This document shows, piece after piece, positions 23,791-47,060 of a stretch of DNA of 64,000 bases. The translations under genes and the position numbers were made by a program. The notes under the pieces are model-generated. The model had not been told where the DNA came from and did not search any database. It saw only the letters and a program-made list of their open reading frames with translations. The stretch lies in IMG/VR virus record IMGVR_UViG_3300043219_000566, positions 152,502 through 216,501 of that record; one strand, written 5' to 3'. Position 1 is the first letter of the stretch; the number at the start of each line of letters is the position of its first letter.

Positions 23791-24522
23791 TCACTTCACA
23801 ATCTTGGTGATTTCATCCGGCGGGAACCGCAGCCGCTGCACACGGTTGGCCTCAAACAGATGAATCTCGCAGTCGTCCTGACAAACCTTCAAGTGCTGCA
23901 TGAACGTCTTCGGGGCGCGCGGGTCGTGCTCGTCGCAAAAATGCCGCGAGCGCACGCTGTCCTCATGAGTGATGTGACGCAGCATGGCAGGTGGATAGCC
24001 CGAAACACGGCCGCCCGCTTTCTGCGACCGGACAATCAAGTCCGTGTCCTCGTAGCCCCAGGCATAGTCGAGATTCTCGTTGTAGCCCCGAATCCGCTCG
24101 AACAGCCAACGCTGGATCGCCAGAGTGCCAGTCGCGCCGCCCATATCCTTGCTACTGAGCAACGGCGAGTTCACCACGATATCAAACCGCCGCTTCAACT
24201 GCGCCACACAGAAACTCACCCAGTTGGGGTCCAGCGCAATATCGGCATCGACGAAGCACAGGATCTCGCCGGTAGCGGCCAGCACCCCCAAATTACGCAT
24301 GTAGCTCGCCCGGTAGTGCGGGGCATTGCGCACATGCAATAGAGTACCGTGGAAGTACTCATTCTGCGGCAACAGTTTCAATCCGTCGTCCTGGGGTCCG
24401 CCGACGATCACGTATTCGACCTGGGGGTAATCCTGCCGGTACCAAGACTGCACCGAATGCTGCAAGTGATGCCACCGATCGTAGCACACAGTGATAATGC
24501 TAGCCTTCCGGAAGAACATCAC
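23791..24522 (-). CDS. Glycosyltransferase (GT-A; GT2/GT7-like)
   Basis: RNLG, FVDAD (DxD), GYNENL..WGYEDTDL. Confidence 0.9.
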   Translation of the reverse strand: MMFFRKASIITVCYDRWHHLQHSVQSWYRQDYPQVEYVIVGGPQDDGLKLLPQNEYFHGTLLHVRNAPHYRASYMRNLGVLAATGEILCFVDADIALDPNWVSFCVAQLKRRFDIVVNSPLLSSKDMGGATGTLAIQRWLFERIRGYNENLDYAWGYEDTDLIVRSQKAGGRVSGYPPAMLRHITHEDSVRSRHFCDEHDPRAPKTFMQHLKVCQDDCEIHLFEANRVQRLRFPPDEITKIVK

Positions 24523-25015
24523 TCTCCTCCGCGCGCCAGTGCTCGAAGTACAAATCGAGTTCTTTCAACCCGAACACCACGTCCCGGGACTGTAGCGTCG
24601 CGATCATCACGTAGAAAACACCCGACATGAACGGGCGGTAACCAGTGCGCAGCAATGAGGAATACAGCTCGGCCTGCTTGCCTTTCAGTTTGGCAGCGCG
24701 CTTGCCCTCGGACAACACCCTGCTGATCGCGTCGGCTCGCCGAGTCCAACCACGACGCACCAGCAGCCTGAGACAGTTCATAATGTAGTCGGTGTCCATC
24801 TCGTCGACATGCACATACTCCATGTTGGATGTGAACCAGACGTGAGCACGCATCTGCAGGCGCGAAGGCGTATGCTGGAACAAAAGATCTTCGGTAGCAT
24901 CGAAAAAGTAGCCGCAGTGCTGACACACCCGGCCGCTCGCGCTGTCTTGGTCGCAATGCTGACAATGGCAGCGGCGGCCCGAGTCGGGTCGCGCCGTAAA
25001 CCGACGTTTCGACAT
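24500..25015 (-). CDS. Hypothetical protein with N-terminal zinc ribbon
   Basis: CQHC...CQHC; AGGAG RBS. Confidence 0.6.
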   Translation of the reverse strand: MSKRRFTARPDSGRRCHCQHCDQDSASGRVCQHCGYFFDATEDLLFQHTPSRLQMRAHVWFTSNMEYVHVDEMDTDYIMNCLRLLVRRGWTRRADAISRVLSEGKRAAKLKGKQAELYSSLLRTGYRPFMSGVFYVMIATLQSRDVVFGLKELDLYFEHWRAEESDVLPEG

Positions 25016-25024
25016 GGGCAGCTC

Positions 25025-25792
25025 CTACCACACTTGTCCCCAGTCCTGTCCGCGATTGGCCTCCCAACCGATCTCTTGGCGATACCACGCCGAGTAGGCT
25101 TCGTGAGCCTGATAGCTGGCTCGAAGATCTGGCGCATCGTACGGAGCAGAACGCTCCTCGTCGGAATGCAACAATACGGCAACAGTCTCAGTGAGATAAT
25201 CGCCGATTGAGCAACCAGCCGTTTTCAACATGGCCTCGGCACGCAGCCGATAGTCGATGCACTCGTAACCCCAACCGTGTGGATTCTCCATCAACGGCTC
25301 GTGGAACCCGCGAAGCCGGGTATGGACCCAACGCTTGACAGCAACCAGACCCTCCAACGTCGGGTCGTAAGGCACGCGGCGAGTAATCCCCTCTGCCACC
25401 CACATGTCAAAATCGTCCCAGTGCACCATCAGCCGAGCAATAAACTCCGGGTCCACCAGAAAATCAGCAGTAGTGAAAATCAACAGCGTGCCGTACGCGT
25501 TGCGTGCTCCCAGATTTCTGGCTCGACACGGATTCCAACGCGTATCCTGCGGACGAAGCAAACGCACACGGCTCAAATCGACAGACGAAGGTTCATCCGA
25601 GAAGTCCACGACCACGATACCGATGTGACCGGTATACTTCTGCTGGAACCACGCTTCGAGAGCCTGGTTGAGATGCTTCTCTCGATCCAGGTAAGGAATG
25701 ACAACAGTGACCGGCGCGCTAGTCGTCCTTGTCTGGTCCAAAGAAGTTTTCTGGCTCTGGGTAACTATCTTCATCGGGATCGGATACCTCAC
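25025..25792 (-). CDS. Glycosyltransferase (GT-A; GT2/GT7-like) with variant catalytic motifs
   Basis: VTVVIPY, VVDFS, ARNLGA, FTTAD (DxD altered), GFHE...GWGYECIDY. Confidence 0.8.
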   Translation of the reverse strand: MRYPIPMKIVTQSQKTSLDQTRTTSAPVTVVIPYLDREKHLNQALEAWFQQKYTGHIGIVVVDFSDEPSSVDLSRVRLLRPQDTRWNPCRARNLGARNAYGTLLIFTTADFLVDPEFIARLMVHWDDFDMWVAEGITRRVPYDPTLEGLVAVKRWVHTRLRGFHEPLMENPHGWGYECIDYRLRAEAMLKTAGCSIGDYLTETVAVLLHSDEERSAPYDAPDLRASYQAHEAYSAWYRQEIGWEANRGQDWGQVW

Positions 25793-26668: not shown

Positions 26669-26671
26669 AGA

Positions 26672-27662: not shown

Positions 27663-28373
27663 TCACACGCAGCACAGCCGACAAATACGGTGCTCCAGCA
27701 CCTCATTCCACAGCTCACGACTTAGCTGCTCCGCGCGCTTGTGAGGACCAAACTCGATCGCAACACAATCTTCCCCGAGGTAAGGATACTCCGCCCGCAC
27801 CGCCAGCATCCGCCGGTAACAGGCGTCCAGCTGCTCCATGCGCCGTCGGCCTTCCTGCTCAAACACGTCCGGGCGATCTCCAGACACCTGGTGCCAGCGT
27901 TCGATAGCCAACTCGACGTCCGCCAACAACACAATCGTGATGTCGGGGACGAAGGAATTGCAGATCCGCAACAACGCCGTGATGTTCTCACGCCCTGAGT
28001 AATCGCCGAATTTCTCTCGATACTCTCTAGTTCCAGCCGCCTGCTCGAAGGCATCCTCACCGTAGGCGTAGAAGCTCGCTGAATAGCGATCGAGCACAAC
28101 GATATCGCCCACAGCAACATAATGACGCACCGTGGTGATCAACTCGCACCGCGCAGCCATGTACAACATCATCCGCGTCATCGGGTTGCCCCAGTCCGCG
28201 AACCGCGCCAGCGGACGAAGCTGCAAATGCGCGGAATGCTGCTCGTGCACACCGGGGTCCTGCAGCAGATGAACACCCCGGTCGGGATACTCGTCACGCA
28301 ACCGAGCAAGCAGTGCTCGGGCCTGAGTAGTCTTGCCTACGCCGTTTAGCCCTTCAAAACAAACGATCGCCAT
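27663..28373 (-). CDS. tmk: Thymidylate kinase-like nucleotide monophosphate kinase
   Basis: FEGLNGVGKTTQ P-loop, LYMAAR, VLDRYSASFYAY, VPDITIVL. Confidence 0.88.
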   Translation of the reverse strand: MAIVCFEGLNGVGKTTQARALLARLRDEYPDRGVHLLQDPGVHEQHSAHLQLRPLARFADWGNPMTRMMLYMAARCELITTVRHYVAVGDIVVLDRYSASFYAYGEDAFEQAAGTREYREKFGDYSGRENITALLRICNSFVPDITIVLLADVELAIERWHQVSGDRPDVFEQEGRRRMEQLDACYRRMLAVRAEYPYLGEDCVAIEFGPHKRAEQLSRELWNEVLEHRICRLCCV

Positions 28374-28864
28374 CAGTGGTCATCCTCCTGCTCGAACAGA
28401 TCAAATGGATCGCGCACTCCGTCCGGCAGAGCTTCCTTGAGTAAAAAGGCCAGCTGAGACCTCCGCTGGTCCCACAGCTTCTTCACCTCCGGGTTCCGCA
28501 GCTGCGCGCTGTTCTCCAGCAGCGCCAACAAGAACACGACGTCGCAGGCTGGCAGACTCAGCACCAACACCTTATCAACGTCGTCAACCTCCTCACCGAC
28601 GAGGCACGGGAGACGCGCCTCCAACCGCGTCACCGCCAGTTTCTTACCCCGGATCTCGCCGAGCAACAAGCGATAGCTAGTGCCCGTGGCATCCCGCGTG
28701 CGCTCCAGAGTAAATCCCCCGAACTTGGCCTCACGCAAGTGCCGCGCGCGGCGAACACCCTTCTCTCCGCAGCGCCGCCGTAGCTCATCGGCAGAGTGCC
28801 ACTTCCCGTCCTTCAGCACCGCGAACGCACCGTACGCGCTGCCATCAATGGTCTTGGTAGGCAT
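28373..28864 (-). CDS. Hypothetical protein, N-terminal winged-helix-like
   Basis: LKDGKWHSADEL...RRARHLRE..FGG. Confidence 0.55.
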   Translation of the reverse strand: MPTKTIDGSAYGAFAVLKDGKWHSADELRRRCGEKGVRRARHLREAKFGGFTLERTRDATGTSYRLLLGEIRGKKLAVTRLEARLPCLVGEEVDDVDKVLVLSLPACDVVFLLALLENSAQLRNPEVKKLWDQRRSQLAFLLKEALPDGVRDPFDLFEQEDDH

Positions 28865-28874
28865 GAGTACCTCC

Positions 28875-28886
28875 GTAGCGCGCTAC
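28875..28886. repeat. 12-bp palindrome GTAGCGCGCTAC (overlaps TAG stop; extends to 14 bp)
   Basis: cGTAGCGCGCTACg. Confidence 0.9.
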
Positions 28887-29728
28887 GCAGACGGTTCCTT
28901 GGCCGCATCGTCGCTGTCCACCCCCGGGCCGCTATGCACAACGCAATCCACGAACTGTGGGGGAAGCTCGGTCATAACACGCATTTCGCACTCGACTACC
29001 GGCATCCCCGCGGCCAGCCGCCGCTTGCGCTCCTCGGTGATCATGTCGATCACGCCCCAGTAGCCAGCTCCATCAACGCGATTACCGCGCTTCGCGCAAT
29101 GAACCTCCCTGCCGAGCTTCATGCACTCGACAATCATCGGAATGTGCTCAGCCTTGAACGCGCGGCCGGGCTTGAGCATCTCGTGGAACAACCCCGTGAC
29201 CATCGTGGACACTTTGGTGTAGTCGTCGAGCGGATGACCGTAGCTGTCGCGCCGCGCACCATGGATCAAGCTCTCGGCTACCTGCAAAATCGAGCGCAGA
29301 TCGCGATCGTCGTCGGTATCGGTGCTGTACGGCCGCCGCTCGGGGATCAGGTCAACCGGCGTCAGCTCGAATTCGTCCGGCCTGCGCTCGGGTCCTTCTG
29401 GACCAGCTGGCGCGGTGGGCCAACAAAGCAAGAACCCCGGCTTGCCGCACTGCCAAGCCACCATTGCTTCGGTATTCGCGCCGTCGGACTCGGTCCATTC
29501 CTTCAGGAACACGATCCCGTCGGCCTCGATAACCTTGGGGATGTCCCGTTTCATGAAAAACGCTCGATCGGTGATACCTTGCTTGAGCGGCTCCTCGCTC
29601 ATCTCGCCCGGGCAAAAGACAGTATGACCCGCTGCGCGCAACGCCTCGCGCGCCCGCTTAAACGCGGGCATGTTGTGATCTGCGAAACCGGTCATCGGCC
29701 CGGCCAAGTACAATTTCATAACGTCCAT
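28883..29728 (-). CDS. DUF4406 (nucleoside deoxyribosyltransferase-like fold) fused to DUF6378-like domain
   Basis: YLAGPMTG..HNMPAF...WTESDGANTE; ILQVAESLIHGARRDSYGHP...KLGRE...DGAGY. Confidence 0.75.
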   Translation of the reverse strand: MDVMKLYLAGPMTGFADHNMPAFKRAREALRAAGHTVFCPGEMSEEPLKQGITDRAFFMKRDIPKVIEADGIVFLKEWTESDGANTEAMVAWQCGKPGFLLCWPTAPAGPEGPERRPDEFELTPVDLIPERRPYSTDTDDDRDLRSILQVAESLIHGARRDSYGHPLDDYTKVSTMVTGLFHEMLKPGRAFKAEHIPMIVECMKLGREVHCAKRGNRVDGAGYWGVIDMITEERKRRLAAGMPVVECEMRVMTELPPQFVDCVVHSGPGVDSDDAAKEPSA

Positions 29729-29737: not shown

Positions 29738-30646
29738 TCACACTGCGGATTCCATACGGGCTCGTCTCCGGGAGTCCGTCTCCGGATTGTCCGACATGCG
29801 CAAGAGTGCTTTCTGCAGCGTCTTGCCGTCCATCGCGAATTTGTTGGTCAAGTGGTTCACCGGAGTCTTGAACGGATTCCACTCCTTGAGGTACCGGTTA
29901 CGTACGTCGCTGCGCCCGCCACCCCAGACCACGTGCGGTGTACCAGTAGCCGCAGCCAGGTGCATCGGCCCCGAAGAGGAACCGACCACCATTCCACCCA
30001 AATGGAAAATGGCCAGCAAATCGTCGAGGCTGGTCTTGTTCAACAGATCGATCCCGCGGATCTCGAACAGCGGAGCGAACCCGGCCGTGCGCCCGACAGT
30101 GACGAACTGACGCTTGTGCTTGCGTGCCCACCGATAAGCCGCTTCGTACGCGCCCAGCGGCGTGTTCTTCTTCTTGCTGCGCGAGATATGCCGAAGATGA
30201 AAAATCACCGCCTTGGGCTTGATCGTCTCAGCCCAGTGCTCCAGCTGCTCATCTGACGGCCGTAGCAACGCGAAAGCCCGGTGCCGCATCTTGAAGCGAT
30301 GGTAGCGGTACTTCGACTTGGGCAAACGCACCGACACAACGTCGTGCCCGCTGGCCACCAGCTTCTCGACCTGCTGATCGCAGCGCACACAGTGCGCCTT
30401 GTAGTGGTTGTAGGCATCAGGGCGGTGCAGCACGAAAGCGTTGCCCTCGGTGCAATCTTCGTGCTCGGCGAAGGTGTCGAACTCCGCAACGAAGTCGCGG
30501 TAAATACCCTCGTGCCCAGAACGAACCACGGCGAACGTGTGCTCGAACGGACCTTGCTCCTGGAACACAAACCGGCAGTGAGTTGCCCAATTTGTCAATT
30601 CCCATCCTAATTCTCCATAGAACGGGTAACAATACAACACACGCAT
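29738..30646 (-). CDS. GT-B glycosyltransferase, GT9 (heptosyltransferase)-like
   Basis: DLLNKTSLDDLLAIF...VGSSSGPMHLAAATGTPHVVW. Confidence 0.8.
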   Translation of the reverse strand: MRVLYCYPFYGELGWELTNWATHCRFVFQEQGPFEHTFAVVRSGHEGIYRDFVAEFDTFAEHEDCTEGNAFVLHRPDAYNHYKAHCVRCDQQVEKLVASGHDVVSVRLPKSKYRYHRFKMRHRAFALLRPSDEQLEHWAETIKPKAVIFHLRHISRSKKKNTPLGAYEAAYRWARKHKRQFVTVGRTAGFAPLFEIRGIDLLNKTSLDDLLAIFHLGGMVVGSSSGPMHLAAATGTPHVVWGGGRSDVRNRYLKEWNPFKTPVNHLTNKFAMDGKTLQKALLRMSDNPETDSRRRARMESAV

Positions 30647-31478: not shown

Positions 31479-31674
31479 GCCGCTCCCCCAGTACCAGTAG
31501 CACGATCATCGTAACCAGCGTTGCTACACCGACTACGACCACCAAGATAGCAAGAAAGCTGGGCTCGGGTTTCCCAGCCGCACGAAACCCAGACACCTTG
31601 ATCATCTCCGGCTCAAAGTCGAACTTCGGAGGCTCAGAGACGTTATCACAATCCGGCAATTTCACCGGGGGCAT
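31471..31674 (-). CDS. Small membrane protein
   Basis: C-terminal TM helix; GGAGGTGA RBS. Confidence 0.55.
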   Translation of the reverse strand: MPPVKLPDCDNVSEPPKFDFEPEMIKVSGFRAAGKPEPSFLAILVVVVGVATLVTMIVLLVLGERHG

Positions 31675-33296: not shown

Positions 33297-33338
33297 GCAG
33301 TTTCCTCGACGAGAACCGATCACCACAGCTCAACGACG

Positions 33339-34463: not shown

Positions 34464-34496
34464 GCCGGATCTCCAGAGCACAACGAGTATGGCTTA

Positions 34497-39572: not shown

Positions 39573-40303
39573 AGCATCTCCCTTCCGAAGCGCCGACGCA
39601 ATTGTCGCGCAAACCGCGGCAGCAGCAGCGCGTACGGAAACGGGCGCGGTGACGACGGAATCTTCCACCGCGCAAGATACCAGGCCAAGATAAACTCGGG
39701 TACGCCGCAGCGATACTTGCGAATCGCACCCAGAATCTCGTCACTCAGCAGCTCGGAGTACAACGCAGCATAAACCCGCATCTGCGCGGGACGCCCTGCC
39801 AGAAACGTGTCGTTGATAGCGTAGCCCGCGCTCGGCAAGCCCTTCACCTTGAAGTTCGAGTAGCACAGCTCCGTGCGAGTCCACGCCAGCAACTTATCCC
39901 AGTCGAGACAGAACGTCGGGTACCAGTCGAAACGGCAACGCAGAATGATGTCGTACTCGTCGAGGTTCCCGATCAACTCGAAAGCACTTTGAATCGTCAA
40001 ATACTGGGCAAATAGCCCGGTCTTGATGCTGAAGCGCTTGCGTTGAAACGGCAGTTGTTCGACCTGTGCGGCTTTGGCCGTGACCTCAGCCGCGACCGCG
40101 TCCCAGGAATGAAGCACCAGCTTACGTGGGCTGTACGTATCCGCAAGCGCCGCCCGGCCCTGCTCACAGCTGTAACCCTCGTCAAACGTGTCCCAGGCAT
40201 AGACATACGTATCGACCTCCTGATCACCGAGCATCTTCCGCCAGGCCGGGGCCGTCTTGGCGAACGTCCGCGGCATACCGCCGAACACCACAGCTACTTT
40301 CAT
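39569..40303 (-). CDS. Putative glycosyl/phospho-transferase-like protein of phage glycan loci
   Basis: MKVAVVFGGMPRTF...YDIILRCRFD...INDTFLAG...PE; ATGA-coupled to the GDPD-like gene. Confidence 0.55.
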   Translation of the reverse strand: MKVAVVFGGMPRTFAKTAPAWRKMLGDQEVDTYVYAWDTFDEGYSCEQGRAALADTYSPRKLVLHSWDAVAAEVTAKAAQVEQLPFQRKRFSIKTGLFAQYLTIQSAFELIGNLDEYDIILRCRFDWYPTFCLDWDKLLAWTRTELCYSNFKVKGLPSAGYAINDTFLAGRPAQMRVYAALYSELLSDEILGAIRKYRCGVPEFILAWYLARWKIPSSPRPFPYALLLPRFARQLRRRFGREML

Positions 40304-40749
40304 GACGTCGCTCCAATGTAACGAGCTGGGTAATCCGAGCAAATCGCGTAGCAGCCCCGCAGCTCATCCGGCGTGTAATTGGCCTGCTCGGGCAATACCG
40401 CGATGCTGCGCTGGGTCAACTGCGCACCGGTCCGCGTCCACACAAGCCCGCACGAAGTCAACGCTACCGCATCCTGGTCGTGAAAGAACACGTGTGCGTA
40501 ATTGAGCAGACGGCAAAGCGCTTCGACATTCTTGGCATGAACCCAAATGTCAGGCTGAGCCAGCCAAAATAGCTCAATGGGCTCCGACGGGCCGTCATGC
40601 CCTAGCCACAGCTCACCCTCATGCCACCAAACGTCGACCTCGACCTGAAAGCCCGCCGCACGCGCAGATTCCAGATACTCAAGCCGATTCTCGCGATTTA
40701 CCACCCGTCCAGCTACATTTCCGCGATGGCTGATGGGTCTTTGATCCAT
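40300..40749 (-). CDS. Minimal glycerophosphodiester phosphodiesterase (GDPD)-like protein
   Basis: ISHRGN, EN, VEVDVW, LGHD, HAKN, ICSDY. Confidence 0.8.
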   Translation of the reverse strand: MDQRPISHRGNVAGRVVNRENRLEYLESARAAGFQVEVDVWWHEGELWLGHDGPSEPIELFWLAQPDIWVHAKNVEALCRLLNYAHVFFHDQDAVALTSCGLVWTRTGAQLTQRSIAVLPEQANYTPDELRGCYAICSDYPARYIGATS

Positions 40750-41336
40750 TTCCGTACCACCGTAATGCCCCAGTCATCGTCGCGCTCCTTGAAGAACTGG
40801 TTCACGTCGAACAGCTCGCGATCGATAGCCGGGAGCAATGCAACCGGACCGGGATGAAAATTCGTGTCATGCAGCACAATAACGCCGAACGGCGAGACAA
40901 ACTCGGCGTAGCGCCAATCGCGCACTACCTGATCGACCGAGTGCCAACCGTCGATGTGTAAGAAGTCGATCACCCGCTCACCGCATAGCTCCTCGACCTT
41001 GGCCATCACGCGCTCTAGGTCCGAGGAGTCGCAGCGCAACGTATGCACGTTGGCGCGCTCGATGTAGCACTTGTCCTGCGTGTCCACGCCCAGGTAAAGC
41101 ACGTCGGCGGGCAATTCCACCAGCAGCACCTGCGTACCGGATGCACCGTCCCCGTGATTGGATACGCCAATTTCCAAAACCAAACGCCTCTGTCCCGCTA
41201 GCGAACGAAATGCTTCGCGCAACACGCTCTGATCGCGCGTAGAGTACACTCTGGAAATGCGCTTCTTAGCCGCAGCAAAATTGGGCGGACGATCCTTGTC
41301 ACCGTTGCTCGGAACATAGGTTAATCCGTAACTCAT
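40713..41336 (-). CDS. Class I SAM-dependent methyltransferase (Methyltransf_24-like)
   Basis: VLEIGV, YLGVD, CDS, IDFLHIDGWHS, GVIVLHDT. Confidence 0.85.
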   Translation of the reverse strand: MSYGLTYVPSNGDKDRPPNFAAAKKRISRVYSTRDQSVLREAFRSLAGQRRLVLEIGVSNHGDGASGTQVLLVELPADVLYLGVDTQDKCYIERANVHTLRCDSSDLERVMAKVEELCGERVIDFLHIDGWHSVDQVVRDWRYAEFVSPFGVIVLHDTNFHPGPVALLPAIDRELFDVNQFFKERDDDWGITVVRKWIKDPSAIAEM

Positions 41337-42529
41337 TCAGTTACTCCCCATAGTCGAATAGCCTGACGGTACTCAGCTCCGTGCTCACCGTCGATCGCCT
41401 GGCGCATCGCCCGCGCGCCTGCCAAGGTTCCGCCGGGATGACCGTGAATACTGCCGCCACAATTCGCCAGCCAGTCGTTACCGAAGCGCTTGACAATCGC
41501 TTGCACCAGCCCCGGGTGCAACCCGCAGCTGAGCGCAGGCAGCACGTCGGCTTGCCGCAGGACGGCCAGCGTCGCGCTCAGCTCATCCTCCGGATCAGAC
41601 AGATACCCGCCCCACATCCCGGCATGAATGAAGTCGACGCCCATCAGGCCCGCCAGCTTGCAAATCACGTTCCAAGAGATGTACGCGCGGTCGGTCGGCG
41701 TGGTCATGATGCGATCGCCGCTTTTCTGAAAGAACAACGCCAACGGCAGATCCAGGCGGCGCACGGCCCGATAGGCTCCCAAGCCACTCCAGATATTGAG
41801 ATGCACAGCATTGCCGCCCAGCTCGTGCACCAACGCTACGCGATCCAGCAGTTCCGGTCCGTCGGCGGTCACACAGACCGCGTAGATCACGTGCTTGTCG
41901 TGCAAGTAGTCCATGATCAGCGGCACCCGCTCCTTCAGCGAGCAGCACGCCGGGTTCGACATGATCTCGTCTTCCTTGATGAAATTGACCCCGCCCGCGA
42001 CCAGCTCCTTGACCACAGCTAGTAACGTGGACGGGCTAATACCCACCTTGGGCTTGATAATCCCACCCAGCAGCGGTTTATCGTGGCAACGGGTAGCCTG
42101 ACGGATGCCGCCGAGCCCGTAGCGCGGCGGCAAGAAGCCCGCGCAAGCTGACTTCGGGATCTCCAGCCCGAGCAATCCGCAGCCCTCGATGAGATCGATG
42201 TCGAGCTGACCACCCATCAACTGACACAGCAATTGAGATATGCCGTCGTTCGGCAAATCGATATTAGCCAGTGGAAACGCGATCTTCACTTCGCCCTTCC
42301 GGCGGCGCGCCAGATCGTCCGGGTCGTGCGGGATCAGACAACCGTGCTTGCGGAACAGCTCGGGGCTCTCCCACGCGCTGCGCATATTCGGGTTGCCAAT
42401 ACTCTGGCCCACCGCCAATGCCCAAGCTGCCTCCTTCAGCGTAGTACGCGAGCGCAAGTTGTAACGCGCAACGATGTACTCCTCGGGGTCGTACTGGCTC
42501 GTGAAAACAATCGACTCAACTGACGACAT
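41333..42529 (-). CDS. RuBisCO-like protein (form IV, divergent)
   Basis: KPLLGGIIKPKVG, GGVNFIKEDE, GVDFIHAG, PALSCGLHPG, CGGSIHGHPGGTLAGARAMRQAI; 398 aa. Confidence 0.93.
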   Translation of the reverse strand: MSSVESIVFTSQYDPEEYIVARYNLRSRTTLKEAAWALAVGQSIGNPNMRSAWESPELFRKHGCLIPHDPDDLARRRKGEVKIAFPLANIDLPNDGISQLLCQLMGGQLDIDLIEGCGLLGLEIPKSACAGFLPPRYGLGGIRQATRCHDKPLLGGIIKPKVGISPSTLLAVVKELVAGGVNFIKEDEIMSNPACCSLKERVPLIMDYLHDKHVIYAVCVTADGPELLDRVALVHELGGNAVHLNIWSGLGAYRAVRRLDLPLALFFQKSGDRIMTTPTDRAYISWNVICKLAGLMGVDFIHAGMWGGYLSDPEDELSATLAVLRQADVLPALSCGLHPGLVQAIVKRFGNDWLANCGGSIHGHPGGTLAGARAMRQAIDGEHGAEYRQAIRLWGVTE

Positions 42530-42839
42530 GCTTGTCTCCCGGCCGCGAAGGGATCTTGACCACGATCAGCTCGCAGTCCTCGTGGAAGACGGGGTCCGCT
42601 AGCTCAAAGGGATGCAGGACAAATACGTCACCGGCCTGCAACTCGCGGTCTTGGATACGCATTCTTCCACGGATGAGGTAGTTGACCTCTACGGATTTCT
42701 TGTGATAGTGCCTCGGCCACTCCTCGCCTTGCCGATGCCGCAGATACCCGACCTCGCAGTCGGCAGTCTGAAAGGCCGCAGGCTCGAAGTTGCCTACGAA
42801 CCAGCCGCCTTCCATCGTCTTGATGTGGCGAATGTCCAT
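42516..42839 (-). CDS. Cupin-fold protein
   Basis: GGWFVGNFEP, HYHKKSVEVNYLIRG, GDVFVL, VVKIPS. Confidence 0.85.
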   Translation of the reverse strand: MDIRHIKTMEGGWFVGNFEPAAFQTADCEVGYLRHRQGEEWPRHYHKKSVEVNYLIRGRMRIQDRELQAGDVFVLHPFELADPVFHEDCELIVVKIPSRPGDKHVVS

Positions 42840-42840: not shown

Positions 42841-43566
42841 CTACTCGTGGGGCAAGTCTCCCCGCCTCAACTTCTCCAGGAACAACTCCAAGTCCTCGGG
42901 AATCCCAATCGCGTGATGAACCTCCGCCGGAATGCGGTAGACCACCACCTTTGAGCCTGCCTTGATCATGGCGTTGTACGTCGGGCACACGTACGGCTCG
43001 CCATCGTGAGCGCGTTCACCGGTCTGAGCAGCTCGAATGAAGTCCCGCCCGTGACGCCACCAGTGAATGCCGTTGCTGGCGATATCGCTGATGACCCGCT
43101 TCTCGACGATAAGGTCGACGACGTCGTTGTCGTCGACGCGCACGAAGCAGTCCGTCGCCCGACTGCACGGATAGCAAACCACGATGCCGTCTGCGCTAGT
43201 GTGCTCGATGAAAGTCAGAAAGCGCTGCGGGTTCCACGTCATGTACTGATCGCAGTTGGCGATCACCAGCTCGTCGTCGTTGTTGATCAACGCCACAGCC
43301 TGTATGCACGTGTCTGCCGGTCCAGCGGTATCGTCGACAATCACGATCTCCGCCTCGGGATAGTGCTCCAGCACGACCGCATCGATCCCGTAGCGCCTCA
43401 CATGCTCACGATGCAGACAGAAAATCAACCGACCCGGCAGATCCAACGTATCGACCGCCCGCTTGAACATCGGCTCCCCCGCCACGTCGATAAGAGGTTT
43501 GATCGTGTCGATGTTGCCGAACCGCGCTCCACGGCCTGCCATAGGGATAAGAACGTTCCTGCTCAT
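42841..43566 (-). CDS. Sugar-phosphate nucleotidyltransferase
   Basis: IPMAGRGARF, KPLIDV.GEPM, T.GPA.T, IANCDQ, IVEK, IGIPEDL. Confidence 0.9.
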   Translation of the reverse strand: MSRNVLIPMAGRGARFGNIDTIKPLIDVAGEPMFKRAVDTLDLPGRLIFCLHREHVRRYGIDAVVLEHYPEAEIVIVDDTAGPADTCIQAVALINNDDELVIANCDQYMTWNPQRFLTFIEHTSADGIVVCYPCSRATDCFVRVDDNDVVDLIVEKRVISDIASNGIHWWRHGRDFIRAAQTGERAHDGEPYVCPTYNAMIKAGSKVVVYRIPAEVHHAIGIPEDLELFLEKLRRGDLPHE

Positions 43567-44477
43567 CAGCTCTCCAATCGTGTAACGAATTCGCGCATCC
43601 GTTCAGCCCGCGTACCGAACTTCGCGTGCAGCAACTCCACCATATTGGTATTGAGACGCTGCCGCAAACTCTCATCTCGCAACAACCGCGAAACGTAACG
43701 AGCCGCAGTATCGATGTCGCGCGCCGGGTAAACCAACGCAGTCTGCTCGTGGATAGCGTAGTCCTGCATCCCGCTGCGCGGGTGATCGGTACAGACCAGC
43801 GCGCAGCCCGCCAGCGCCGCCTCGATCGGTGGATTGTGCAGGCCCTCCAGCTCGGTGGGCGCAAACCAGACCTTCAGTCCGTTGTACCAGTTGTTCAGCC
43901 GCTCCGGAGTCGGACGCTTGATATGGCGATTGAGCTGCTGGATCGGCTGATCAAGCTGACGTTCGAGAAAGTCGATGTCGCCGTTGCGCTTGGTCGCATG
44001 GCGATTGTTGCGCAGAGCCCCCGCCCCGGCCCGCACGCGCGGAACCAGGTGAAACCAGTGCGGGTCCAGCCCCGGGTACTGCAGCATCACCGAGATCCCG
44101 TACTCTCGCATGTAGGCGTAGAGCCACTGGGAGTTCACGAAGACGCGATCGACCGCCCGAAACGAGCGCAGTAACGTCGCCTCGGTGGCTTTCCACAGCT
44201 CCAGGCCGCGCACGTAGTAGGTCTGCAACCGAGCGGAAGTGTAGCGCGCTACAGATCTGACGCTGTTGATCCCGGTCGCGATGGTCACGTCGCAGGGCGG
44301 ATGCGTCTCGCCCCCGATGCACTCGATCTTCGCCGGATGCCAAGTGTAACGGCTACGTCCACAATGAAAGAAGGCCTTGTGCCCTAGCTCGCGCAGCGTC
44401 TCCACGCAACGCACCAGCGTACGGGAGCCGCCGTTGTTAGCTAGCCCCACGCCGCGCATGTTAAAGCAAATTCTCAT
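43566..44477 (-). CDS. GT-B glycosyltransferase (GT4-like)
   Basis: NNGGSRTL, VNSQWL, EGLHNPPIEAALAGC. Confidence 0.85.
   Translation of the reverse strand: MRICFNMRGVGLANNGGSRTLVRCVETLRELGHKAFFHCGRSRYTWHPAKIECIGGETHPPCDVTIATGINSVRSVARYTSARLQTYYVRGLELWKATEATLLRSFRAVDRVFVNSQWLYAYMREYGISVMLQYPGLDPHWFHLVPRVRAGAGALRNNRHATKRNGDIDFLERQLDQPIQQLNRHIKRPTPERLNNWYNGLKVWFAPTELEGLHNPPIEAALAGCALVCTDHPRSGMQDYAIHEQTALVYPARDIDTAARYVSRLLRDESLRQRLNTNMVELLHAKFGTRAERMREFVTRLES
44241..44252. repeat. 12-bp palindrome GTAGCGCGCTAC (in frame, VARY; extends to 14 bp)
   Basis: tGTAGCGCGCTACa. Confidence 0.9.
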
Positions 44478-44794
44478 AGCTTTATCCGTGCCCAGTGTTC
44501 TTCTGGCTCGTCACATTCGATCACGAGCATGCGAACAACCAGAGCCGGAATGGAAAAAGGCACAAAGCCCCTCAGCCCTCGGCGGCCCATGTTGATTTCC
44601 CAAAACTGCAGCTGCCCCCACTCACCATTCGGCTCGCCGTCTATCGCTCCTAAGAACCGCACCAGTTGCCCTTGGCCCTGAGACCCGAGTTTTCGGAAAG
44701 CATCGATGAACACCGGAACCACGCGGCCAATGTTGGATTCGTCGACAACTTGTCCATCGTACTCGGTAGATAACATCACCACGTACTCCTTCAT
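44474..44794 (-). CDS. Hypothetical protein
   Basis: Stop coupled (ATGA) to the glycosyltransferase start. Confidence 0.55.
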   Translation of the reverse strand: MKEYVVMLSTEYDGQVVDESNIGRVVPVFIDAFRKLGSQGQGQLVRFLGAIDGEPNGEWGQLQFWEINMGRRGLRGFVPFSIPALVVRMLVIECDEPEEHWARIKL

Positions 44795-44801
44795 CACCCG
44801 C

Positions 44802-45602
44802 CTACGTCGCACCAGGAATTTCGGCATCGGCGTCCACGGCATTGGGCCATAGGTCCAGCGCCTTCCGCGGGTCTTCGGCATCGTACTCCCAGAACAGCCG
44901 CCAACGCCAAGCCGGAGCAGGCGGGATTTTGCGGTGCTCAGCCGCGAGCACCACCGACGTCGGAGTATCCGGGTTCACGCGTAGCAAGTGGTTCAGATTG
45001 ATATTGCGATTTTGGCATTCCCAGTTACGTCGACGGACCTGACGAATCCGGATGTCACCGATCAACGTAAGGTGCTCGATGCACTTCTTGTACGGAAACT
45101 TTCCGGTCGCAAAGCCAGCAGCAGTCTCACAAAAACGCGTGAGCGTGAACGGCACCTGCTTGTCGCGCGCCTGCGTCATCAGTGAATCACCCGGAAACTT
45201 GATCTCGGGCATGACCACCACCGTTAGCTCAGGATTTGTCCTATTCGTCTGCGGATGCCAGTGGCCATCCATCTCGCGCTCAAAGAAACGACACCAACGC
45301 AACCACTCCCAATCCGGCTCGGACATAATCGCGCCTGGCCGATGAGTTCCGCGCGCCCGCTCGCCCCTGCAACGCAGCACGCGCTTACCCCGCACCGCAT
45401 CGAGCGCGTGACCAATGTGCGCAGCTGTGCTGCTAGAATAGGTTTCGTCGGGATGCCGAATGTAAAAGATATCCTCCCCCACCCTCCGTCCAATCTCGTA
45501 CCAACTGTGAGACCACAGACTGATCCCGTCTGTGGACATACGGGAACCCCCGCGCTGCTTCCTGGAGATCCAGGCCGCAGCCACGTCGCTATGACTAACC
45601 AT
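44802..45602 (-). CDS. Hypothetical protein
   Basis: GAGGT RBS before ATG at 45602. Confidence 0.6.
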   Translation of the reverse strand: MVSHSDVAAAWISRKQRGGSRMSTDGISLWSHSWYEIGRRVGEDIFYIRHPDETYSSSTAAHIGHALDAVRGKRVLRCRGERARGTHRPGAIMSEPDWEWLRWCRFFEREMDGHWHPQTNRTNPELTVVVMPEIKFPGDSLMTQARDKQVPFTLTRFCETAAGFATGKFPYKKCIEHLTLIGDIRIRQVRRRNWECQNRNINLNHLLRVNPDTPTSVVLAAEHRKIPPAPAWRWRLFWEYDAEDPRKALDLWPNAVDADAEIPGAT

Positions 45603-45615
45603 CGTTACCTCAGAA

Positions 45616-46029
45616 TCAATCGAAACCGGTGAATACCTCATTGGAGAATTTGTCTGCTTCGGAAGCCTCGGGCTGCAAAAGGCCCTGCTTCTCTTTGGCC
45701 CGCTCCCAACGCTGCATAACCGTTGCAACGAACTCGCTCATAACGGCCCGGCGCAATCGGTCGATCAGCTCGCGAAAGCGTGCGTTGTCAGTAGAGCGCA
45801 GATTCGCAAACCCGCGCGTAGCGGTAGAGACTCCGATAACCATGCCTTTGTGCTGAATGGGGTTGCTAGTCTGTACGATGTGATCGTACAGCGCATGACC
45901 GATGATCTTGGATTGCTCCGACGGGCCAAACTTACCTTTCAGCGGCACGCCCCGCCCTTGAAAATCGATACCATCGATCACCCGGTCGCGCTCGCGCTCG
46001 GCTAACTGCACTAGCTGCGCAAAAGTCAC
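45616..46029 (-). CDS. Hypothetical protein
   Basis: GTGA coupling to the upstream kinase. Confidence 0.55.
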   Translation of the reverse strand: MTFAQLVQLAERERDRVIDGIDFQGRGVPLKGKFGPSEQSKIIGHALYDHIVQTSNPIQHKGMVIGVSTATRGFANLRSTDNARFRELIDRLRRAVMSEFVATVMQRWERAKEKQGLLQPEASEADKFSNEVFTGFD

Positions 46030-47060
46030 AGCCCGTTCTCCTTGATGTGCCGATCCAGCGCTGCCAGCAACTGTTCGCGGCTGACCGCGTTCGTATCGTG
46101 GTGCTGCACCGCCTCGGCAGCAGCAACATTGGCGAGCAACGCCGCGTCCGGAGACGATAACCCGCAGGCACAAGCCCAGGCGTAGGTCGCCAGCACGGTA
46201 TCACCCGCGCCGGTGACATTGTACACCTCGCGCGCAAACCGCGGCAGGCAGAGCTGCTCAGCTAGATCATCGTAGACCAGCGTCATGCCGTCCCGCCCAC
46301 GAGTGATAAGCAGCTCATCGATACCCAGAGTCTTAGCAAACTCCCGCGGAGCAACAACCTTACCGGCGTCGTCCAGCTGCCCGCCCATGCGCTCGAACTC
46401 GCGCAAATTGGGCTTCAGCGTAGTGTGGCTGCCGACGTTGGCGCGGTACATGGGTAGCGATTCAGGCTTGCACTCCAGGTAGCAGCGCGCGCGGGACGCG
46501 CGGATGGGCTCCAGCACGTCTTCGGCTATCGTGCCCTTGTCGTAATCAGCCACCACGATGCCGCAGACCATGGAATTGGACAGCGCTGTACGCAGCTCCT
46601 GACACAGGCGATTACGACTTCTCTTGTCGCCGCGGCAGTCTGCGGCAAGAGTAACCGACTCGTCGACCCGCAGCAGCTGCTGCTGATGCTCGGCGATGTA
46701 CCGCGTCTTCCGCTCGGTTCGCAAAGCCGGGAAAGTTACTAGCTGAGCACTGCAGCAGCCAGAAAAGTACGCGGTCAGAAAAGCCCCGTCTTCGTCGCTA
46801 CCCACCCGGCCAACGAGAGCGACCAACGCACCTAACTTCATCAAGTTGTGGGCAACGTTAGCCGCCCCGCCAGGGCACAGGCGAGTACAAGACTGTTGTA
46901 AAACAGGCACCGGGGCTTCGGGCGAGATACGCTTCACCTCGCCGTAAACGTAGCAATCGACCATCACGTCGCCGATAACGACGAAGCGCGGAGCCACGCT
47001 AGAAACCTGACGCAAGTTCTTCGCCGCCGAAACGAGGAATCGTTTGGTGTCGTCGTTCAT
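46026..47060 (-). CDS. HldE/RfaE kinase domain-like (heptose-7-phosphate kinase, PfkB family), stand-alone
   Basis: VIGDVMVDCYVYGEVKRISPEAPVPV, GGAANVA, LLRVD, DYDKG, KPNLREF, NVTGAGDTV. Confidence 0.9.
   Translation of the reverse strand: MNDDTKRFLVSAAKNLRQVSSVAPRFVVIGDVMVDCYVYGEVKRISPEAPVPVLQQSCTRLCPGGAANVAHNLMKLGALVALVGRVGSDEDGAFLTAYFSGCCSAQLVTFPALRTERKTRYIAEHQQQLLRVDESVTLAADCRGDKRSRNRLCQELRTALSNSMVCGIVVADYDKGTIAEDVLEPIRASRARCYLECKPESLPMYRANVGSHTTLKPNLREFERMGGQLDDAGKVVAPREFAKTLGIDELLITRGRDGMTLVYDDLAEQLCLPRFAREVYNVTGAGDTVLATYAWACACGLSSPDAALLANVAAAEAVQHHDTNAVSREQLLAALDRHIKENGL

Follow-up and report, generated by a model that had tools for sequence, protein, structure and literature searches.

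A putative glycan-assembly island with exchangeable cassettes in an uncultivated marine-sediment phage

Introduction

Clusters of sugar-modifying genes in large phages have been interpreted in terms of the host surface. In jumbo phages, clusters with cupin isomerases, PfkB kinases, nucleotidyltransferases and up to eight glycosyltransferase (GT) families were described, which vary between related phages and were read as serving surface-polysaccharide modification, as in the ‘LPS/capsular polysaccharide’ clusters of cyanophages, whereas secondary-metabolite roles were proposed for a second class of cyanophage sugar clusters (Iyer et al., 2021). However, virus-encoded glycosylation of virions has precedent in the glycans on the C-termini of mycobacteriophage capsid and tail-tube subunits (summarised in PMC12619734), and virus GTs also hypermodify DNA with glycans (Pyle et al., 2024, as cited in PMC12619734).

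In the present study a window of 64,000 nucleotides (positions 152,502 to 216,501 of IMG/VR record IMGVR_UViG_3300043219_000566, a 216 kb uncultivated marine-sediment phage) was analyzed with regard to a block of about 23 kb at window positions 23791-47060. The original prediction, made from the sequence alone, had proposed about eight GT-like genes of both folds, five sulfotransferase-fold genes, a methyltransferase, a nucleotidyltransferase (NTase) and a heptose-kinase-like gene without any export machinery, and had inferred a product made in the cytoplasm on a phage substrate, either a sulfated and methylated glycan coat on the virion or hypermodified DNA, rather than a host capsule. We found this observation to be correct, while the interpretation was supported only in part.

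Gene content of the island

The block holds 37 tightly packed minus-strand genes (Table 1). Five GTs are supported by Pfam; one more is sub-threshold, two rest on motifs only, and a DUF7796 protein, which the original prediction did not list, is a further predicted glycan enzyme. Five sulfotransferase-fold genes are supported, two of them by Pfam, and the NTase and the heptose-kinase-like PfkB were confirmed. Of 37 junctions, 13 overlap and 16 have gaps of 1-25 nt (median 9 nt, 97% coding), so that ‘tightly packed, about a third overlapping’ is a more accurate description than the proposed ‘mostly translationally coupled’. The gene at 59642, outside the island and proposed as a UDP-sugar dehydrogenase, has the NAD-binding and central domains but lacks the C-terminal UDP-binding domain. 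Also overlooked had been a RuBisCO-like protein (RLP) with a cupin and a GDPD-like partner, a SIS/GmhA-like gene, and interspersed non-glycan genes (Tmk-like, DUF4406/DUF6378, Tad2-like, a lipoprotein).

Table 1: Features of the island and the dehydrogenase outside it, with window coordinates and supporting evidence (identities to the relative refer to a syntenic 204 kb phage; L108, L109, L110, L112 and the P0067 contig are compared loci).
Position	Strand	Feature	Support
46026-47060	-	PfkB sugar kinase, closest to the D-glycero-beta-D-manno-heptose-7-phosphate kinase domain of HldE; first gene of the island, conserved arm	Pfam PfkB E 1e-31; TIGR02198 241 bits, below the 345 cut-off; 37% identity to the relative's PfkB in the same position
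44474-46029	-	Three genes of unknown function (137, 226 and 122 aa) between PfkB and the anchor GT4	No Pfam or PHROG match; 137-aa and 226-aa genes 33% and 29% identical to syntenic genes in L108
43566-44477	-	Anchor GT4/GT1 glycosyltransferase (297 aa by the JGI call), most widely conserved island gene	Glycos_transf_1 and Glyco_trans_1_4; 64% identity to the relative; more than 130 homologues at 40-68% identity, on contigs up to 654 kb
42841-43566	-	Sugar-1-phosphate nucleotidylyltransferase, first gene of the RLP cassette	NTP_transf_3; family profile hits NDP-sugar pyrophosphorylase 4evw at E 5e-35, then heptose-1-P and mannose-1-P guanylyltransferases and RmlA, IspD only at 1e-3
42516-42839	-	Small cupin (107 aa) with H-x-H...E metal motif, partner of the RLP	Weak Cupin_7 hit; invariant H44, H46 and E51; profile hits cupins in the PDB
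41333-42529	-	RuBisCO-like protein (398 aa) of the phage ‘IV-like’ type; predicted enolase/isomerase-type enzyme acting on a phospho-sugar, not a carboxylase	RuBisCO_large E 4.5e-35; far below every NCBIfam equivalog cut-off; best PDB match RLP 3nwr; 254 relatives in IMG/VR
40713-41336	-	Methyltransferase-like protein (207 aa), directly after the RLP	Methyltransf_24 at 23.9 bits, below the 26.3 cut-off; homologues in the same slot elsewhere pass
40300-40749	-	GDPD-like half-domain protein (149 aa), conserved partner of the RLP	Invariant H8-R9-G10, E20-N21, E37-x-D39, H51-D52, H71-x-K73 and H90; profile matches the N-terminal catalytic part of glycerophosphodiester phosphodiesterase 7e0v at E 0.0014
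39569-40303	-	DUF7796-family protein (244 aa) of a nearly virus-only family; predicted glycan-tailoring or transferase module	phrog_13607; structural neighbours at TM 0.76-0.80 almost all viral; fused in other phages to Sulfotransfer_2, Glyco_transf_92, Methyltransf_24, GT8-like or PRK modules
38844-39572	-	Sulfotransferase-fold protein (242 aa)	GGSGST and VRHP (PSB/PB-like) motifs; feature search hits Sulfotransfer_3 families at 0.96; 42% identity to the relative
38179-38847	-	Possible GT-A enzyme (222 aa)	‘HLEDDWE’ motif only; no Pfam match; 39% identity to the relative
37448-38176	-	Sulfotransferase (Sulfotransfer_3, 242 aa), specific to this phage	E 5.9e-20; weak resemblance to NoeE (carbohydrate sulfotransferase); no match in the relative or in IMG/VR
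36418-37431	-	Possible GT-B enzyme (337 aa; CgeB- or exostosin-like)	‘DVFFIGN’ motif; only two homologues, 37-38% identical, both on phage-like contigs
34839-36378	-	Two paralogous sulfotransferase-fold genes, 34839-35606 (255 aa) and 35641-36378 (245 aa), specific to this phage	40% identical to each other; RRSGHH and VRDPYNTFASR motifs; model of 35641-36378 matches Sulfotransfer_3 clusters at TM 0.62-0.67, nearest clusters almost exclusively viral
33693-34481	-	Sulfotransferase (Sulfotransfer_1/3, 262 aa; ST1), conserved core	Pfam; 54% identity to the relative; Sulfotransfer_1/3-annotated genes also in the islands of the 180, 276 and 402 kb contigs
32322-33326	-	GT4/GT1 glycosyltransferase, conserved core	Glyco_trans_1_4 E 2.2e-10; 62% identity to the relative
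32031-32294		Tad2-like
31688-31912		Small conserved lipoprotein
30651-31478	-	GT2-like protein (275 aa), conserved core	Glycos_transf_2 at 19.5 bits, sub-threshold; 61% identity to the relative
29738-30646	-	GT9 (heptosyltransferase)-like glycosyltransferase, conserved core	Glyco_transf_9 at 27.2 bits (cut-off 22), only the C-terminal part matching; 60% identity to the relative; GT9 next to the anchor GT4 in L110 and L112, in the same island in L109 and the P0067 contig
27663-29728	-	DUF4406/DUF6378 (nucleoside deoxyribosyltransferase-like; 28883-29728), a 163-aa unknown and a dTMP-kinase-like (Tmk-like) P-loop protein (27663-28373), nucleotide-metabolism-type genes in the conserved arm	Pfam; TIGR00041 at 54.7 bits; 61%, 48% and 52% identity to the relative; Tmk-like gene also between GT9 and GT2 in L109
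25991-26668	-	SIS-domain protein, weakly GmhA-like (sedoheptulose-7-P isomerase), conserved core	SIS_2 at 26.5 bits (cut-off 27); GmhA models at E 5e-5; 61% identity to the relative
23791-25792	-	GT2 (25025-25792), a 171-aa unknown and GT2+Glyco_transf_7C (23791-24522); last genes of the island, next to ThyX	Pfam (38.3 bits; 48.9 and 39.2 bits); 63% and 58% identity to the relative; the two GTs 25% identical to each other
59642-60508		Dehydrogenase, outside the island	NAD-binding and central domains

For the two motif-only candidates, proposed as an ‘other GT-A’ and a ‘CgeB-like’ enzyme, AF2 models failed (pLDDT 35), and profile alignments with hhalign gave 0.6% for the 222-aa protein against GT2 and 3% for the 337-aa protein against the GT4 family. 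Profile searches of the PDB returned only weak hits, with B4GALNT1 at E 0.18 for the former, and exostosin/GT47 domain proteins and an entry named AO75L at E 0.09 for the latter.

Phage origin and absence of export genes

The region is genuinely of phage origin and not a misassembled host locus. CheckV rates the record as 100% complete, TerL is 28% identical to that of Salmonella phage Arash, and 224 of 231 genes lie on one strand. GC content of the island (0.594) equals that of the rest of the window, with sub-blocks at 0.593-0.596, a second (Logan) assembly is colinear, and a 204 kb relative from another sample, at 38% GC, has the same island between the same phage genes.

No protein in the whole 216.5 kb genome has more than two TM-like segments, and neither an initiating transferase (Bac_transf) nor a flippase, polymerase or permease is encoded, so that assembly must be cytoplasmic and by soluble enzymes. 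The search for PAPS synthesis, which had been suggested as a check, was negative, as neither an APS kinase nor the CysD family was found in the genome, and sulfation would thus depend on host PAPS. Since no acceptor or exporter is encoded, a soluble or lipid-bound small glycoconjugate, i.e., a sulfated, methylated oligosaccharide or glycolipid acting as metabolite, signal, osmolyte, or anti-defence or anti-competitor molecule, or else glycosylation of host proteins, could also be considered. The weak resemblance of the sulfotransferase at 37448-38176 to NoeE, which sulfates a soluble lipo-oligosaccharide, the anti-defence-type Tad2-like gene inside the island and the secondary-metabolite roles proposed by Iyer et al. 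(2021) would fit. However, this reading seems unlikely, because a core of six or more GTs conserved across very different phages suggests a defined polymeric or protein-linked product, and no scaffold-forming enzymes such as NRPS, PKS or acyltransferases were seen in the island.

The surroundings of the island, which is embedded between RNR, ThyX, a Tmk-like gene and DUF4406/DUF6378, and in other phages sits next to DNA ligase, an Ogg-like gene or PolIII-alpha, could point to DNA hypermodification, in which the GTs would build a glycan on a modified base in phage DNA and the neighbouring ThyX, dTMP-kinase-like and nucleoside-deoxyribosyltransferase-like genes would supply the modified nucleotide. 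Yet this half of the original prediction is disfavoured and regarded as very unlikely: the neighbouring thymidylate synthase is ThyX, a true TS, and no ThyA-family dCMP or dUMP hydroxymethylase was found in the complete genome. A search for TET/JBP likewise gave no hit, although this is a weak negative, as the control was silent. Furthermore, nine or so GT-like genes, five sulfotransferases and dedicated NDP-sugar cassettes are far beyond any known DNA glycan, and sulfated DNA glycans are not known.

Conserved arms and exchanged cassette

New in the present analysis is the division of the island into conserved and exchanged parts. About 20 island genes match the syntenic relative at 29-67% protein identity; both ends are conserved and only the centre is exchanged. 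One arm, at the PfkB end, comprises the PfkB kinase, three unknown genes and the 297-aa GT4, the other, at the ThyX end, comprises ST1, GT4, GT2-like, GT9-like, the SIS isomerase, GT2 and GT2/7C, with the dTMP-kinase-like and DUF4406/DUF6378 genes among them. Between the arms lie a sugar-precursor cassette and lineage-specific tailoring enzymes. The RLP cassette sits in the same position as a classical amino-deoxy-sugar cassette.

Similar islands were found around homologues of the anchor GT4 on contigs of 180-654 kb with GC 0.35-0.67. In five sampled contexts it lies among further GTs and methyltransferases; four of the five also show GT9 and GT2 genes (three with a 7C domain), and three show sulfotransferases. 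Each context has a different precursor cassette: DegT/dehydratase, NeuB/LicD/cytidylyltransferase, KpsC/S-like, or radical SAM. The span in GC suggests very different hosts but one shared acceptor and core glycan, which is hard to reconcile with tailoring to one host's surface glycan and lends indirect support to a phage substrate.

In this phage the precursor cassette consists of six genes: NTase, cupin, RLP, methyltransferase, GDPD-like protein and DUF7796. In 80 viral RLP loci, the RLP travels with the NTase (78), the GDPD-like gene (77) and the cupin (59), and NTase-cupin fusions exist in some loci. Homologues of the methyltransferase occur in 23 of the 80, while in other loci the same slot holds Methyltransf_24/CmcI, FkbM or TylF-type sugar methyltransferases. 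Neighbours include GDP-mannose 4,6-dehydratase (38 loci), sugar O-methyltransferases and UDP-GlcNAc 2-epimerase. Catalytic and phosphate-binding motifs of the RLP (K159/K161, K185-E-D-E188, S334/G336, G358-G359 and H362/H364) are invariant in 81 sequences, while H294 is replaced by Q, R295 by K and H298 by D.

Inferred product and acceptor

A serious rival to a phage acceptor, possible although held to be somewhat less likely, is remodelling of a host envelope glycan, which is not excluded. In this view the phage GTs, sulfotransferases and methyltransferase would act at the cytoplasmic face on host lipid-linked intermediates (lipid A-core, Und-PP-oligosaccharide, or a lyso-PG/Kdo-anchored polymer), host flippases or ABC transporters would export the altered glycan, and the changed cell surface would block superinfection or stop progeny from being trapped on debris, in line with the published reading of similar cyanophage clusters (Iyer et al., 2021). 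The GT9-like, GmhA-like and HldE-kinase-like genes recall LPS inner-core chemistry, and soluble GTs can work on host lipid-linked intermediates and rely on host exporters. A homologue (P0006) of the 245-aa sulfotransferase-like family lies in a bacterial polysaccharide locus next to LptD, one more distant island carries a KpsC/S-like Capsule_synth gene, which hints at a lipid-anchored product there, and the small conserved lipoprotein fits a host-envelope or exclusion theme. In addition, the island sits among early-type nucleotide-metabolism genes, in every context seen it lies in the DNA and nucleotide-metabolism part of the genome and not in a structural module, and a conserved host acceptor, such as Kdo2-lipid A or undecaprenyl phosphate, would also explain a conserved core. 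On the other hand, everything for initiation and export would have to be borrowed from the host, host surface glycans and their acceptors differ greatly even within a species while the GT core recurs in phages of widely different GC, and the DUF7796 family and the clusters nearest to the 245-aa protein are almost exclusively viral.

While gene content, solubility of the enzymes, absence of export and initiation genes, conserved ends with a swapped cassette and conserved catalytic motifs of the RLP family were demonstrated here, the order of reactions, the identity of the sugar and above all the acceptor are inferred from sequence alone, without any virion protein, glycan or sulfate having been observed, and two of the counted GTs remain candidates. 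We infer that the RLP enolises or isomerises a phospho-keto-sugar, that the cupin and the GDPD-like protein then process the product, and that the NTase activates it as an NDP-sugar, which is methylated. The soluble GT-A and GT-B enzymes would then build an oligosaccharide in the cytoplasm, which up to five sulfotransferases would decorate using host PAPS. Tentatively, the most likely acceptor is a phage-encoded one, namely virion surface proteins, which would give a sulfated, methylated glycan coat whose outer part varies between related phages.

Results

Genome context of the island

The island is located in the window, the last 64 kb of a single contig of 216,501 bp from a JGI marine-sediment metagenome, and the virus record was rated 100% complete by CheckV. 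Of 231 predicted genes 224 lie on the minus strand, and GC content is about 0.59 throughout. The genome encodes a large terminase, which is 28% identical over 73% of its length to that of Salmonella phage Arash, as well as a family-A DNA polymerase, an SbcC-like nuclease, HNH endonucleases, a ribonucleotide reductase with an HNH insertion and a ThyX thymidylate synthase. A megablast search of the region and its left flank against 50,697 phage records returned no match, and tblastn searches of the same records with the RuBisCO-like protein (RLP) and one sulfotransferase likewise returned none; no isolate is related. This is a tailed phage far from any isolate. PHROGs gave no match for most of the large proteins, a search with the Gp23 capsid family found nothing, although its control was silent, and capsid and tail genes were not identified. 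Clues to the host were scarce: no tRNA was found in the window, and the best cellular relative of the PfkB kinase is only 33% identical. The host is not a cyanobacterium, judged by the lack of psbA and the marine sediment source.

The region is part of the phage and not a misassembled host locus. GC content of the island (0.594) equals that of the rest of the window, with each sub-block at 0.593-0.596, and a Logan assembly of 216,295 bp is colinear. Most tellingly, a contig of 204,244 bp from another sample (GC 0.38) carries the same island between the same phage genes, and this synteny with an independent relative answers the question of misassembly.

Gene content

The original prediction of a phage region rich in glycosyltransferase (GT) and sulfotransferase genes held. 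The JGI gene calls place 37 genes in the island, all on the minus strand; the stretch is 97% coding, and of 37 junctions 13 overlap and 16 have gaps of 1-25 nt. Five GTs pass the Pfam cut-offs and a further GT2-like gene is below threshold. The second 'other GT-A' and the 'CgeB-like' gene of the original prediction (g222 and g337, encoding 222 and 337 aa) rest on visible motifs only, since single-sequence AF2 models reached pLDDT 35-37 and were unusable, hhalign gave probabilities of 0.6% for g222 against the GT2 and 3% for g337 against the GT4 family alignment, and PDB profile hits reached only E 0.09-0.18. For g337 the only PDB hits were two exostosin/GT47 domain proteins and an entry named only 'AO75L'; A075L is a chlorovirus capsid-glycan enzyme, hence this is a lead and not evidence. 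One more predicted glycan enzyme, DUF7796, had not been listed; it belongs to a nearly virus-only family, and in other phages the same module is fused to sulfotransferase, GT92, GT8-like or methyltransferase modules. NCBIfam gave no specific names for the GTs or sulfotransferases.

The sulfotransferase fold, with 5'-PSB and 3'-PB elements read as motifs in the sequences, is supported for all five predicted genes: two by Pfam, one by model similarity, one by paralogy and one by feature search. The 'UDP-sugar dehydrogenase' of the original prediction lacks its C-terminal UDP-binding domain. Moreover, several genes had been missed. These are the RLP (PF00016 at 121.8 bits, E 4.5e-35), preceded by a small cupin and followed by a methyltransferase-like gene and a protein of 149 aa, whose family has invariant HRG, EN, E-x-D and HD motifs matching the catalytic N-terminal half of glycerophosphodiester phosphodiesterases (GDPD-like). 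Nor is the block purely glycan-related, as it also contains a dTMP-kinase-like (Tmk-like) gene, a DUF4406/DUF6378 (nucleoside deoxyribosyltransferase-like) gene, a weakly GmhA-like SIS protein, a Tad2-like gene and a small lipoprotein. It abuts a sigma-70 region-4 protein, ThyX and the ribonucleotide reductase. Features of the window are compiled in the following table.

Features of the island and its surroundings (window positions)
Position	Strand	Feature	Remarks
3294-5051	-	RNA-ligase-like protein	585 aa
16715-20173	-	Ribonucleotide reductase large subunit	About 1130-1150 aa; internal HNH endonuclease segment (residues about 435-570), looks like an intein or a homing-endonuclease insertion
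23196-23783	-	Protein with sigma-70 region-4 domain	195 aa; between island and ThyX; absent from the 204 kb relative; may be a phage transcription factor controlling neighbouring genes
23791-47060	-	Glycan island	37 genes
23791-24522	-	GT2+Glyco_transf_7C	Pfam-supported
25025-25792	-	GT2	Pfam-supported
29738-30646	-	GT9-like	Pfam-supported
30651-31478	-	GT2-like	Below Pfam threshold
31471-31674	-	Protein with C-terminal TM anchor	67 aa; gene next to the lipoprotein
31688-31912	-	Small lipoprotein	74 aa; signal peptide ending in the lipobox-like FPG-C; most conserved island gene after ThyX
32031-32294	-	Tad2-like domain (PF11195, anti-Thoeris sponge family)	87 aa; no counterpart in the 204 kb relative
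32322-33326	-	GT4/GT1	Pfam-supported
36418-37431	-	g337, possible GT ('CgeB-like')	Motif only
38179-38847	-	g222, possible GT-A	Motif only
39569-40303	-	DUF7796	Predicted glycan enzyme
41333-42529	-	RuBisCO-like protein	
42516-42839	-	Cupin	
42841-43566	-	Nucleotidyltransferase (NTase)	
43566-44477	-	GT4/GT1 (anchor GT4)	297 aa; Pfam-supported
46026-47060	-	PfkB sugar kinase	
51130-51645	-	Second cupin-domain protein (Cupin_2), outside the island	171 aa by our ORF, 120 aa by the JGI call
54021-55202	-	Free-standing HNH endonuclease	393 aa
57275-58099	-	AAA_33 P-loop kinase-like	Near the truncated sugar dehydrogenase; does not register as APS kinase
58438-59058	-	AAA_33 P-loop kinase-like	Near the truncated sugar dehydrogenase; does not register as APS kinase
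59261-59620	-	ORF downstream of the dehydrogenase	119 aa; no Pfam match
59642-60508	-	UDP-glucose/GDP-mannose dehydrogenase homologue	NAD-binding and central domains only; may be truncated, split or highly diverged
61389-63155	-	HerA/DUF87-type ATPase	588 aa

Some of the genes recall an NDP-heptose pathway with a GT9 heptosyltransferase, but with weak scores. The SIS protein matched SIS_2 at 26.5 bits against a cut-off of 27 and GmhA equivalogs at E 5e-5, far below their cut-offs. The PfkB kinase is closest to the heptose-7-phosphate kinase domain of HldE (TIGR02198, 241 bits), yet below the cut-off of 345. The GT9-like protein passed the Pfam cut-off (27.2 vs 22 bits) only over 47 residues of the C-terminal domain, and NCBIfam heptosyltransferase models reached only E 7e-4. 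No HAD-type hit, as would be expected for a GmhB phosphatase, was obtained among the island genes.

Export, initiation and sulfate supply

No predicted protein among the 231 genes has more than two TM-like segments according to a hydropathy screen, which is not a profile search, and no initiating transferase of the Bac_transf type (PF02397) was matched in the complete genome, while the control was positive in 10 of 14 genomes. As no polytopic protein was found, an initiating transferase of the WecA type is lacking as well. Neither APS kinase nor the CysD/PAPS_reduct family was detected in the genome, a search for PAPS synthesis having been named beforehand as a check. Assembly must therefore be by soluble enzymes in the cytoplasm, using PAPS from the host, and any export would need host machinery.

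Conserved arms and exchanged centre

Comparison with the 204 kb relative revealed two conserved arms. At the PfkB end these are PfkB (37% identity), two unknown genes (33% and 29%) and the anchor GT4 (64%). At the ThyX end a sulfotransferase-like gene (42%), g222 (39%), g337 (37%), the sulfotransferase ST1 (54%), GT4 (62%), the lipoprotein (67%), GT2-like (61%), GT9-like (60%), DUF4406/6378 (61%), a gene of 163 aa (48%), Tmk-like (52%), SIS (61%), GT2 (63%) and GT2/7C (58%) are followed by ThyX (70%). The lipoprotein and the adjacent TM-anchored protein could be a superinfection-exclusion or spanin-like pair, and they suggest a diderm host. Between the arms the content is exchanged: this phage possesses NTase, cupin, RLP, methyltransferase, GDPD-like protein and DUF7796 together with the sulfotransferase ST3 and the g245/g255 sulfotransferase pair, whereas the relative has an epimerase/dehydratase, a hexapeptide acetyltransferase, methyltransferases, a DegT aminotransferase, Sulfotransfer_2 and extra GT4/GT2 genes, which is a classical amino-deoxy-sugar cassette. 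The central cassette differs again in two further loci with the anchor GT4 (L110 and L112). The two syntenic phages (relative represented by loci L105/L108) differ by 21 GC percentage points (0.38 vs 0.59) at 50-70% protein identity, an unusually wide compositional spread within one lineage.

IMG/VR scans with two sulfotransferases and with the anchor GT4 alignment found no relatives, but the larger protein collection did, and the anchor GT4 has more than 130 homologues at 40-68% identity. Five contexts were sampled, a contig of 37.7 kb and contigs of 180, 276, 402 and 654 kb. All five place the GT4 among further GTs and methyltransferases, four also show GT9 and GT2 genes (three with a 7C domain), and three show sulfotransferases. 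The precursor cassettes differ, with NeuB/LicD/cytidylyltransferase/HAD, dehydratases, a KpsC/S-like gene, or radical-SAM enzymes, and the carriers span GC 0.35-0.67. On the 654 kb contig (L111) and the 180 kb contig (P0067), which are huge-phage-like, the related islands lie near PrkA/SpoVR-like genes, a TnpB/Cas12f-like gene, a reverse transcriptase and a 'Volactin' actin-like gene.

The RLP cassette

The RLP has 254 relatives on IMG/VR contigs at 50-61% identity, many on contigs of about 190-290 kb, from which its membership in the phage 'IV-like' group (Jaffe et al., bioRxiv 10.1101/386292) is inferred. In the 80 loci examined it co-occurs with the NTase (78), the GDPD-like gene (77), the cupin (59) and the methyltransferase homologue (23), but with none of the GTs or sulfotransferases of this phage. 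NTase-cupin fusions exist. Recurrent neighbours are GDP-mannose 4,6-dehydratase (38 loci), FkbM, TylF/CmcI or Methyltransf_24 sugar methyltransferases in the slot after the RLP, UDP-GlcNAc 2-epimerase, and GT4. Several contigs with the phage-type RLP cassette (L006, L009, L011, L023, L036, L042, L053 and L063 among our IMG/VR loci) are labelled as giant-virus metagenome-assembled genomes (GVMAG); as their cassettes match those on ordinary phage contigs, they may be large phages binned as giant viruses.

The RLP keeps K175/K177, the carbamate lysine and metal ligands (K185-E-D-E188) and the phosphate-binding glycines, all of which are invariant in 81 sequences. By alignment to RuBisCO 8dht, however, residues needed for carboxylation are lost: H294 is Q, R295 is K, H298 is D, and there is no loop-6 lysine. 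Q268 is invariant, and all true-RuBisCO equivalogs score far below their cut-offs. The NTase family profile matches NDP-sugar pyrophosphorylases, with 4evw at 5e-35, followed by the heptose-1-P guanylyltransferase of the 6-deoxy-heptose pathway, mannose-1-P guanylyltransferases and RmlA, whereas IspD appears only at 1e-3. Thus, the idea that an IspD/TarI-like NTase makes a CDP-alditol to be transferred by the GDPD-like protein was dropped. We infer that the cassette makes an unusual, probably methylated, NDP-sugar, for which the RLP would act as an enolase or isomerase on a phospho-keto-sugar precursor.

Discussion

Comparison with described systems

Jumbo cyanophage 'LPS/capsular polysaccharide' clusters of the P-SSM2 type, the function of which has not been tested experimentally, were described as large phage-borne clusters with a PfkB sugar kinase, a cupin, a nucleotidyltransferase and several GT families, and with content differing between related phages (Iyer et al. 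2021, PMC7824862). These properties are shared by the present island. However, the one to four NAD-dependent epimerase/dehydratase paralogues of those clusters are absent among its genes, although the relative has one, the NTase is RmlA/ManC/HddC-like and not of the HIGH superfamily, and neither five sulfotransferases nor a RuBisCO-like cassette is mentioned in that review. In addition, the host differs, and a GT core is conserved across phages of very different GC.

In mycobacteriophage virion O-glycosylation (Freeman et al. 2023, as summarised in PMC12619734 and PMC11256854) soluble phage-encoded GTs likewise work in the cytoplasm without export machinery, and the product decorates the virus's own particle. 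Those systems use two to a few GTs in phages of about 60 kb, as opposed to about nine GT-like genes, five sulfotransferases and dedicated sugar-supply cassettes in the 216 kb phage, which is known only from metagenomes and for which no evidence of virion modification exists. With bacterial O-antigen and capsule loci (Wzx/Wzy- or ABC-dependent) the island shares the mosaic layout of conserved flanks and exchangeable sugar-biosynthesis and GT cassettes as well as tailoring by methyl- and sulfotransferases, but the locus is in a virus, and no initiating phosphoglycosyl transferase, flippase, polymerase, chain-length regulator or ABC exporter was found in the genome.

About 90 divergent 'IV-like' RLPs had already been reported on large phage genomes of about 200 kb from many environments, with carbamate lysine and metal ligands kept, several carboxylase residues lost and function unknown (Jaffe et al., bioRxiv 10.1101/386292). 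That work reports the proteins and their phylogeny, whereas here the RLP is placed in a conserved cassette inside glycan islands, at a position occupied by a classical NDP-sugar cassette in a relative, which points to a role in nucleotide-sugar precursor supply. In Rhodospirillum rubrum an RLP of the MTA-isoprenoid shunt is also encoded next to a small metal-binding cupin, which acts on the RLP's product. This reading is not supported by the context of the phage cassette, because the NTase is of the sugar-1-phosphate type, no other methionine-salvage or MEP-pathway genes were seen in the island, and the surroundings are those of glycan biosynthesis.

Possible acceptors of the glycan

The interpretation originally proposed, a sulfated and methylated glycan on the virion or hypermodified DNA rather than a host capsule, was only partly supported. 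Whereas gene content, the lack of detectable initiation and export genes and the conserved arms with an exchanged centre were shown by the analysis, the order of reactions, the sugar made by the cassette and, above all, the acceptor, including any attachment to capsid or tail-tube subunits, are inferred. Virion proteins are tentatively preferred, with less than even confidence, since the enzymes are soluble, nothing for initiation or export is encoded, two of the families are virus-enriched, and mycobacteriophage capsid and tail-tube glycosylation provides a precedent. Furthermore, the core gene set recurs across phages of very different GC, which suggests a shared, phage-encoded acceptor. Remodelling of the host envelope, the published interpretation of comparable cyanophage clusters, is somewhat more doubtful but fits the GT9-like, GmhA-like and HldE-like genes, the KpsC/S-like gene in one related island, a homologue of the g245 family in a bacterial polysaccharide locus, the lipoprotein and the position of the island among early-type genes.

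Hypermodification of DNA would fit the nucleotide-metabolism neighbourhood but is very unlikely. It was suspected that the thymidylate-synthase homologue might be a hydroxymethylase, yet it is a ThyX, and no ThyA family (PF00303) was matched in the genome with a positive control, so that an enabling hydroxymethylase is lacking. None of the island GTs matched the T4 alpha- or beta-glucosyltransferase families in the Pfam scans, and the reading fits poorly with this many GTs and sulfotransferases. A soluble or lipid glycoconjugate, or glycosylation of host proteins, is likewise unlikely, though it takes most of the remaining probability.

Implications

Phage glycan clusters, virion glycosylation and phage RLPs have each been described before, whereas the scale of the island and its richness in sulfotransferases, the layout of conserved arms with a swappable cassette recurring across large phages, and the placement of the RLP in a sugar-precursor cassette are new. 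In the open-access literature searched, sulfotransferases were paired with jumbo or huge phages only in passing mentions. With regard to annotation, 'LPS/capsule' labels on phage genes should not be taken as evidence of host-surface remodelling. For the phage RLPs, reported in 2018 with unknown function, the cassette provides the first concrete, testable context.

It is not excluded, although rather unlikely on present evidence, that a widespread lineage of large and huge phages (contigs of 180-654 kb, GC 0.35-0.67) coats its virions with a glycan, the inner part of which would be built by a conserved set of virus-encoded GTs, while exchangeable sugar-supply, sulfation and methylation cassettes would diversify the outer part as a viral counterpart of O-antigen serotype variation. 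In one such cassette a RuBisCO-superfamily enzyme would have been recruited to nucleotide-sugar biosynthesis, which would be a new reaction class for that superfamily and would give the enigmatic phage RLPs their first function. If the glycan sits on virions, the interchangeable precursor and tailoring cassettes around a recurrent GT core would mean serotype-like diversification of phage surfaces, which would bear on adsorption, on avoiding trapping on debris or mucus, on grazing and immune recognition, and on phage ecology in sediments.
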